Assembly: GCF_002113885.1 (NCBI RefSeq)
Contig: NW_018406060.1
Location: 1,022,315-1,086,314, forward strand
DNA from: Mizuhopecten yessoensis
Taxonomy: Eukaryota
DNA: 64,000 nucleotides
Reading direction: 5' to 3'
Both the position numbers and the translations under genes were made by a program. A model generated the notes under the pieces. That model made no database searches, was not told the DNA's origin, and saw only the letters and a list, made by a program, of their open reading frames with translations. Shown here in pieces: positions 23,901-26,900 of the stretch (its first letter is position 1; every line of letters starts with the position of its first letter).

Positions 23901-26900
23901 GAAGACATATTTGAATTCTTCCAATTCAAAGGTTGGACTAGTTTATTATGAAATTTCAGGGGTGAATGAGTTAACTTTATATGACTTTGAACTGTTTCTG
24001 TATGATTTCATTGTTACAAGTCTGGCTCTTACACAGGGTTAAATGATGGTGCTGCCTGTGTGGTGTTGATGGAGGAAGCTGAGTCAGTAAAGCGAGGCCT
24101 CACCCCTCTGGCCCGGGTGGTTTCCTGGGGACAAGCTGGGGTCGATCCCGCAGTCATGGGGACAGGACCAATACCTGCCACCAGGAAGGCGGTCAGTCAT
24201 TAGACATATATTCAATATATTTACACAGGTGGATGTTGATTGTACATGTGGATAAGCACATGTGAAATCTAAGACAATACGACTCAGGGTTAAGTTAATA
24301 GCTCTAAAGAGCTAATGTTCATTGTTTAACATGTACGACTCTGCATAAATCTTCTTGTACCTTGTAAGTTAGGGTTACGAGGCTTAGTACTGGTATTAAA
24401 TTATTTCTCATGAAGAAGGCAAATGTAATATCTTTTGCATGCTGTATGCCGGTAAACTTATGCCAGATCAAATTTTTCGCCCTTCACTGGTAAACTCTGT
24501 TTTCACGCAGTGTTAATTTCGCCCTTTATATGCTATTACTATGTATACTATGTTGTGTACTTATTTTCACTGTTATGATAACTTCGCCCACATTACGGAC
24601 GGTGAAAACTGAAAGTAAAACTGTGGCGAAAAATTCCCGGTATTCAGTAGTTTTTCTCGAGGATATTATACCAATACTTATATAACAGTGTTGTATGGTG
24701 GTGTATTTTATAGCTACTATGCCAAAATAGTTGTCAGAGTTAAGTTGAGACAGTGCTGACGTAAGAGGGAGTATACTATGCATTTAACTCTTGCTAGTAT
24801 TTGGCATCTGAAGTAACTATTAAATGTATCCCTATCAATTGTTATTCTGTCCCCAAATGATTGTGTCTATGGCCATGGTCTTTAATGTGATGTCAAAATG
24901 AAACAAATGACTCCACACCCAGGCTTGGTCTATGTAACAGCTGTCAGGGTAGTAAACACATTGTCGACTTAAGCGATATAAACTGTTATAAAGACTAATA
25001 AAAACAGTGATAACATGTTGAGGAAGAATTCATAATGGTTATTCATAAATATGTTTCTTTTCTAGTTGGAGAAGGCTAGATGGAGCGTTAATGATGTGGA
25101 CTTATATGAGCTGAACGAAGCATTTGCTGCCCAGTCAGCTGCAGTGGTGAAGGATTTGGGCTGTGACCCTAGTAAAGTAGGTACAGTTCTGGCAGTGGTG
25201 AAGGATTTGGGCTGTGACCCTAGTAAAGTAGGTACAGTTCTGGCAGTGGTGAAGGATTTGGGCTGTGACCCTAGTAAAGTAGGTACAGTTCTGGCAGTGG
25301 TGAAGGATTTGGGCTGTGACCCTAGTAAAGTAGGTACAGTTCTGGCAGTGGTGAAGGATTTGGGCTGTGACCCTAGTAAAGTAGGTACAGTTCTGGCAGT
25401 GGTGAAGGATTTGGGCTGTGACCCTAGTAAAGTAGGTACAGTTCTGGCAGTGGTGAAGGATTTGGGCTGTGACCCTAGTAAAGTAGGTACAGTTCTGGCA
25501 GTGGTGAAGGATTTGGGCTGTGACCCTAGTAAAGTAGGTACAGTTCTGGCAGTGGTGAAGGATTTGGGCTGTGACCCTAGTAAAGTAGGTACAGTTCTGG
25601 CAGTGGTGAAGGATTTGGGCTGTGACCCTAGTAAAGTAGGTACAGTTCTGGCAGTGGTGAAGGATTTGGGCTGTGACCCTAGTAAAGTAGGTACAGTTCT
25701 GGCAGTGGTGAAGGATTTGGGCTGTGACCCTAGTAAAGTAGGTACAGTTCTGGCAGTGGTGAAGGATTTGGGCTGTGACCCTAGTAAAGTAGGTACAGTT
25801 CTGGCAGTGGTGAAGGATTTGGGCTGTGACCCTAGTAAAGTAGGTACAGTTCTGGCAGTGGTGAAGGATTTGGGCTGTGACCCTAGTAAAGTAGGTACAG
25901 TTCTGGCAGTGGTGAAGGATTTGGGCTGTGACCCTAGTAAAGTAGGTACAGTTCTGGCAGTGGTGAAGGATTTGGGCTGTGACCCTAGTAAAGTAGGTAC
26001 AGTTCTGGCAGTGGTGAAGGATTTGGGCTGTGACCCTAGTAAAGTAGGTACAGTTCTGGCAGTGGTGAAGGATTTGGGCTGTGACCCTAGTAAAGTAGGT
26101 ACAGTTCTGGCAGTGGTGAAGGATTTGGGCTGTGACCCTAGTAAAGTAGGTACAGTTCTGGCAGTGGTGAAGGATTTGGGCTGTGACCCTAGTAAAGTAG
26201 GTACAGTTCTGGCAGTGGTGAAGGATTTGGGCTGTGACCCTAGTAAAGTAGGTACAGTTCTGGCAGTGGTGAAGGATTTGGGCTGTGACCCTAGTAAAGT
26301 AGGTACAGTTCTGGCAGTGGTGAAGGATTTGGGCTGTGACCCTAGTAAAGTAGGTACAGTTCTGGCAGTGGTGAAGGATTTGGGCTGTGACCCTAGTAAA
26401 GTAGGTACAGTTCTGGCAGTGGTGAAGGATTTGGGCTGTGACCCTAGTAAAGTAGGTACAGTTCTGGCAGTGGTGAAGGATTTGGGCTGTGACCCTAGTA
26501 AAGTAGGTACAGTTCTGGCAGTGGTGAAGGATTTGGGCTGTGACCCTAGTAAAGTAGGTACAGTTCTGGCAATGTTAAGGGATAGTAACCGTTACAGGGG
26601 TAGTAACCATTACAGGGGTAGTAACCATTACATGGGTCGTAACCATTACAGGGGTCGTAACCATTACAGGGGTCGTAACCATTATAGGGGAAGTAACCAT
26701 TACAGGAGTAGTAACCATTACAGGGGTTGTAACTATTACAGGGGAAGTAACCATTACAGGGGAAGTGACCATTACAAGTGTAGTGACCATTACAGGGGAA
26801 GTAACCATTACAGGGGTCGTTACCATTATAGGGGAAGTGACCATTACAAGTGTAGTGACCATTACAGGGGTCGTTACCATTACAGGGGAAGTGACCATTA

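Follow-up and report, generated by a model that had tools for sequence, protein, structure and literature searches.

Tandem repeats that span an exon-intron boundary, and so carry copies of a splice signal, have been described in amphioxus and in human genes. They were named 'mirages' in amphioxus Adh3 and described again in the globin genes BflGb6 and BflGb9 (Canestro et al. 2002, cited through PMC3087553); there they leave regular splicing undisturbed, unit identity ranges from 81 to 100%, and the Adh3 mirage shows both length polymorphism and somatic instability (PMC3087553). The variable number tandem repeat in intron 7 of human F7 consists of 5-9 copies of a 37-bp unit, the first of which lies across the exon 7 boundary, and experiments have proven that only the most upstream of its identical donors is used and that mutation of this donor shifts splicing to the next one (PMC1557585). 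In the minisatellites of human IFI6 (6-16) intron 2 and CBS intron 13 the two nearest pseudo-donors are also used, giving isoforms that differ by whole units. The intronic minisatellites of human LMNB2 and PDGF, with 10-18 copies of monomers of 100 and 81 bp, respectively, are spliced solely from the authentic donor. Here we describe an array of this type in the scallop Mizuhopecten yessoensis, located at the exon 8/intron 8 junction of a cytosolic acetoacetyl-CoA thiolase (ACAT2-like) gene. The gene lies within 64,000 nucleotides of contig NW_018406060.1 (positions 1,022,315 to 1,086,314, forward strand), referred to as the window, in whose coordinates all positions are given unless another contig is named. 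The array is probably a young, lineage-specific splice-donor minisatellite without a separate function, splicing most likely proceeding from the first donor.

The array occupies positions 25141-26568 (+ strand) and consists of 28 perfect 51-bp units, each comprising 36 nt of exon end and 15 nt of intron start, with unit 1 representing the authentic junction. Direct reading of the sequence, Tandem Repeats Finder (25141-26571, period 51, 28.1 copies, 100% matches, no indels) and an exact-match count (28 copies at a uniform spacing of 51, then 3 further matching bases) agree on this number, which had been proposed in an earlier sequence-only reading of the window. The borders within the unit were set by comparison with P0001, a public protein model of 395 aa, and with the mRNA of a related scallop, and they too confirm what had been proposed, namely that the unit joins the last 36 nt of exon 8 to a donor and intron start at AAA/GTAGGT, the intronic part being GTAGGT plus 9 more bases. 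The authentic 5' splice site (AAA/GTAGGT, 25177-25182, + strand) serves as donor in that protein model and is followed by 27 pseudo-donors identical to it (25228-26559, + strand). The first intronic G falls at 25177+51k (k = 0 to 27) for all donors and at 25228+51k for the pseudo-donors, all of which lie upstream of the exon 9 acceptor at 28198; the last, at 26554, is 1645 nt away from it. Within the window the 51-bp unit is confined to the array, and the array is a single locus in the haploid 988-Mb assembly.

The 3' flank of the array (26569-26582, + strand) opens with GCA and has 10 of 14 bases as at the unit start, a match of this quality occurring at just 37 of the 13184 intron positions. 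The flank may be a decayed 29th unit or part of an imperfect direct repeat from which the first duplication started. The remainder of intron 8 is filled by a second minisatellite of 18 bp (26578-28134, + strand; 87 copies, 86% matches). We considered whether the 18-bp array might be an acceptor counterpart of the donor array, and rejected this, as its similarity to the start of exon 9 was reached by 123 of 500 shuffled sequences. One open frame of 731 codons (25066-27258) begins with exon 8, crosses the whole 51-bp array and extends into the 18-bp array, which is also open for 508 codons in another frame. Such long open frames could mislead gene predictors.

The unit length is a multiple of three, the unit contains no stop codon and exon 8 is in phase 0. 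We checked every donor in turn: splicing from donor n to exon 9 would keep the frame without a retained stop and lengthen the protein by (n-1) x 17 residues in the interval from NEAF to GHP, in line with the sequence-only reading, up to an exon of 1488 nt and 459 additional residues for the last donor. The combination of in-frame length and open frame needs no special explanation, because it asks only that the unit be divisible by three and that five new codons be free of stops, for which we estimate a chance of about one in four. The further statement that all donors share an identical context applies to the 36 nt upstream of each and breaks down beyond this point, where donor 1 alone is preceded by true exon and lies 111 nt from the exon 8 acceptor.

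Thus, the scallop array belongs to the already described splice-donor minisatellite type, in which tandem units reiterate a donor, the first unit carries the authentic junction and the rest are intronic. Like the amphioxus mirages it has units of tens of bp that lie across an exon-intron boundary, with many copies retaining the splice signal. In contrast to these it is found in a mollusc instead of a cephalochordate, and it is assembled as perfectly homogeneous, in frame and free of stops. It shares with F7 an authentic, non-optimal donor that is followed by strictly identical pseudo-donors, whereas the F7 unit contains only 4 exon nt and its length of 37 is not a multiple of three, compared with 36 exonic nt and 28 copies here; first-donor use is experimentally proven in F7, while in the scallop it is deduced from a protein model. 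IFI6 and CBS likewise reiterate donors at an exon-intron boundary and represent the documented version of stepwise isoform extension, but use there is limited to the two nearest pseudo-sites, and an insertion in the scallop protein would hit the conserved catalytic core of an enzyme. LMNB2 and PDGF resemble the scallop gene in having boundary-spanning minisatellites and differ in their longer units and vertebrate hosts, and in-frame potential is not reported in the account of them that was consulted. We found no description of such arrays in molluscs in the literature searched, which is a weak negative. The locus had also been presented as a natural test of donor choice; such a test is not new, as identical reiterated donors have already been studied in human F7, IFI6 and CBS.

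The gene was identified from several lines of evidence. On the + strand eight stretches match Pfam Thiolase_N or Thiolase_C in the expected order, and a word search with the open frame from exon 8 retrieved P0001, an NCBI protein of M. yessoensis entitled 'acetyl-CoA acetyltransferase, cytosolic-like isoform X2 [Mizuhopecten yessoensis]'. Candidate exons were tested singly for AG/GT borders and for a translation matching P0001 at the correct offset, which left a single consistent set of nine coding exons spanning 14952-28369 (+ strand); exons were searched individually and P0001 served as the full-length sequence. The coding exons are located at 14952-15000, 17777-17911 and 18700-18881 (exons 1-3), 20612-20729, 22290-22433 and 23629-23751 (exons 4-6), and 24037-24191, 25066-25176 and 28199-28369 including the stop codon (exons 7-9), all on the + strand. 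An mRNA contig of a related scallop (L010) has exon borders that agree with this model. Exon 8 (25066-25176, + strand, 111 nt) carries the NEAF motif and is in phase 0 at both ends, its last 36 nt forming the exonic part of the repeat. Exon 9 (28199-28369, + strand; acceptor ttccag/GTAAAC) carries GHP with the catalytic His and the C-terminal CxGGG motif.

The best solved-structure matches of the exons are human ACAT2 entries 1wl4 and 9v13. Aligned to 1wl4, exon 8 covers residues 306-341 of human ACAT2 and exon 9 continues from residue 342 to 396, so that the first donor yields the canonical gap-free join. The protein has the catalytic Cys and the NEAF, GHP and C-terminal CxG motifs, and residues C90, N319-F322, G350-P352 and C381 are invariant in the thiolase alignment A1. 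The ACAT2-like locus is single in the genome, and the remaining thiolase matches are paralogues with 40-68% identity; by sequence comparison, therefore, the gene is the single-copy cytosolic ACAT2 orthologue and not another thiolase paralogue. Taken together, Pfam, P0001 and the 1wl4 alignment uphold the earlier naming of the gene as an ACAT2-like thiolase and of the junction as that of exons 8 and 9. The host of the array is an essential, single-copy enzyme gene.

The most likely origin can be outlined. A 51-bp segment across the exon 8/intron 8 junction was duplicated in tandem, probably seeded by an imperfect direct repeat at the two ends of the segment, and the copies were then presumably multiplied by slippage or unequal exchange until the array reached roughly 1.4 kb. 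Splicing of the pre-mRNA most likely starts from the authentic donor, leaving some 27 others as silent intronic pseudo-donors and the enzyme unchanged. The array is one of many that this repeat-rich genome produces and tolerates.

Use of the first donor is indicated by P0001, which joins exon 8 to exon 9 from donor 1. No protein containing exon 8 followed by the 17-aa unit was found in the large collections searched, which covered proteins of 58-184 aa and 275-877 aa, a weak negative. The residues flanking the junction (K339, V340 and N341, with the junction at K339/V340) do not vary among 25 thiolases from animals and bacteria. The structural model (pLDDT 85) places the junction at an ordered, short turn beyond helix 323-333, with His351 lying 11 residues further on. 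Given an invariant junction close to His351 in a single-copy gene, heavy use of downstream donors would probably be harmful, which favours the first donor. RNA structure that might hide the downstream donors was considered and rejected, as exon 8 with three units folds no better than shuffled sequences (z = +1.3).

One competitor of first-donor splicing is that downstream donors are used measurably, giving thiolase isoforms extended by 17, 34 or more residues that escape nonsense-mediated decay. We consider this unlikely, while recognizing that several observations are compatible with it. The 28 donors do not differ from one another, nor do the 36 nt preceding each of them; the unit is in frame and without stop, and donors 2-4 would define exons of 162-264 nt, which is within the usual size range. 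Against it stand the donor chosen in P0001, the failure to find a unit-bearing protein, the invariant position that an insertion would split near the catalytic His of a single-copy gene, and the exclusive use of the authentic donor in F7, LMNB2 and PDGF. Thus, of the '17-aa ratchet' proposed in the sequence-only reading, the possibility of in-frame extension stands and its actual use is unsupported.

Several points nevertheless weigh against silent pseudo-donors. We infer first-donor use from one automated protein model and from analogy with other genes. P0001 is entitled isoform X2, and an isoform X1 was not found. IFI6 and CBS do use the two nearest pseudo-donors of comparable minisatellites. 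A product with one extra unit would restore the native sequence beside exon 9 and is therefore conceivable, and low-level use of downstream donors is possible, their products being in frame and expected to escape nonsense-mediated decay. Some in vitro work on duplicated donors favours the site closest to the acceptor. The perfection of the array is also to be read with care: both the number 28 and the lack of differences between units were reconstructed by the assembler, because short reads cannot span 1.43 kb of identical units.

This last point leads to the second alternative, in which the duplication is real but the 28 perfect copies stem from gap filling with short reads and the true array is much shorter (e.g. 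2-5 copies) or internally variable. The assembly used here (82,659 contigs, 987.6 Mb) corresponds to the published P. yessoensis assembly (82,731 scaffolds, 987.7 Mb), which is listed as Illumina only, so that the caution about an assembler consensus voiced in the sequence-only reading was well placed. We sampled 200 kb of the same scaffold together with the window (264 kb; period at least 10, at least 3.5 copies) and counted 49 arrays, among which only the intron-8 array both exceeds the read length and shows 100% identity. On the other hand, an assembler needs the unit-to-unit junction to be present in reads in order to loop, and therefore the tandem duplication itself is real, with at least two copies. 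There is no N in the window, both flanks join the array in register, and paired-end spacing normally constrains the length that is filled in. The same assembly shows no general homogenising, as it retains variants nearby, for example in an array of 40-bp units downstream of the thiolase gene (42890-43991; 1.1 kb, 27.5 copies, 97%), which makes it probable that the intron-8 array is highly homogeneous and close to the stated length. We therefore judge serious inflation of the copy number to be improbable, about as much so as measurable use of the downstream donors. Perfect arrays in this Illumina-only assembly call for caution in general.

The age of the array can be approached from related scallops. 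The orthologous locus of Ylistrum balloti (L014) is syntenic, and at introns 3, 4 and 8 its exon-intron junctions are present once each. The introns there are short (about 320 nt for intron 3 and about 460 nt for intron 8), and the intronic parts of the M. yessoensis units can be recognised as orthologous to their starts. Orthology of the two thiolase loci is supported by a common neighbour, an RPL36A-type (Ribosomal_L44) gene that lies upstream of the thiolase gene at about 9862-11822 of the window and at 1-1249 of L014, there on the opposite strand. A genomic contig of another pectinid (L009) continues from exon 8 into 320 nt of unique intron and has no array, and the related scallop mRNA L010 has a normal join of exons 8 and 9. 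As the arrays are absent from the Y. balloti orthologue, all three donor arrays of the M. yessoensis gene, including those in introns 3 and 4 described below, arose after the split from the Ylistrum lineage. Intron 8 of Y. balloti contains a 23-bp minisatellite of 15.7 copies (L014 10689-11048), ending about 20 nt before the acceptor. This repeat is unrelated to those of M. yessoensis, and repeats have thus been gained independently in intron 8 of both lineages.

Reiterated donors recur within the thiolase gene. Intron 3 contains a donor minisatellite of 26 units of 26 bp (18873-19552, + strand; 88% matches), comprising the last 9 nt of exon 3 and GTGAGA..., in which the GT is kept in 24 of 26 units and lost in 2. 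At intron 4 the closing 24 nt of exon 4 occur nine times, each with GTATGT or GTGTGT, at a spacing of about 95 bp (20706-21636, + strand; 78% matches), and the mRNA contig L010 matches copies of this array. Both arrays are older and diverged and cannot be assembly artefacts. Three of the eight donors of the gene are therefore reiterated, at three apparent ages; the identities of 78%, 88% and 100% suggest different times of origin, although homogenisation can blur such dating. At each of these three introns P0001 is joined from the first donor. In introns 3 and 4 any downstream donor would retain a stop, whereas those of intron 8 are stop-free, and so only the intron-8 array would be invisible to nonsense-mediated decay. 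The intron-4 array also contains, twice, a small element with inverted ends (AACTCATTCACCC ... GGGTGAATGAGTT; 20883-20975 and about 21536-21596, the latter apparently a partial copy). It resembles a miniature inverted-repeat element and may have landed in the array or been copied with it.

Similar arrays occur elsewhere on the scaffold. In the blind 200-kb sample an exon of NADSYN1 is followed by a donor array in which the exon end and CAG/GTAAT are reiterated about 24 times in units of 53-59 bp (exon at L024:8964-9092, minus strand; array plus exon 7573-9092, scaffold C2733:187573-189092). This exon was named through a solved-structure search (6ofb residues 590-632, E = 4e-11), Pfam giving no match for the L024 or the L025 exon. 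In L025 (3950-5001, minus strand) we also observed a 41-bp array of about 25 copies with 81% identity, whose units end in AGG/GTAAGT. It begins at the end of an open stretch of 25 codons preceded by ttcttag and is a candidate donor array at a putative exon. A 9-mer donor match score discriminates poorly in such comparisons, the true donors of the thiolase gene scoring just 5-8 of 9. Apart from the array of 40-bp units mentioned above, the region downstream of the thiolase gene contains an array of 34-bp units (34092-38914; 4.8 kb, 142 copies, 87%).

The clustering of donor arrays exceeds what random placement predicts. When the intron-8 array is set aside, two of the four other arrays in the thiolase gene span a donor, compared with an expectation of about 3.5% for each if duplications of these unit lengths fell at random, and a rough calculation of ours gives a binomial probability near 0.007. 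A bolder reading, which we regard as doubtful, is that segments consisting of an exon end and its donor could be preferred substrates of transcription- or splicing-linked tandem duplication in the scallop lineage, as in amphioxus, instead of minisatellites that arise at random places and are merely tolerated. ACAT2 might then record three successive events of different age, and the youngest, in frame and without stops, might still segregate as an allele and allow its nearest pseudo-donors to produce some isoforms with 17 additional residues.

Least probable is that the reiterated donors are kept as U1 snRNP (small nuclear ribonucleoprotein) recruitment sites that reinforce exon 8 definition, suppress premature intronic cleavage or tune expression: the over-representation of donor-anchored arrays in the gene and the finding of at least one more in the 200-kb sample would fit, but mutational bias accounts for the excess equally well, the arrays are absent from the Y. 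balloti orthologue and the intron-8 array from a second relative as well, they differ in unit, length and age and are decaying (two of the 26 intron-3 units have no GT), and nothing ties copy number to expression.

A young, lineage-specific donor minisatellite spliced from its first donor thus remains the explanation that we favour. Taken alone, it is one more boundary-spanning minisatellite and changes little. With many identical donors and a simple readout, a ladder with 51-nt steps, it is unusually well suited to work on 5' splice-site choice in a non-vertebrate, and mis-splicing at the intron-8 array would be invisible to nonsense-mediated decay. With three arrays of different ages in one gene and none in the related scallop, the locus provides a dated series for asking why exon-end-plus-donor segments duplicate so often in this genome.

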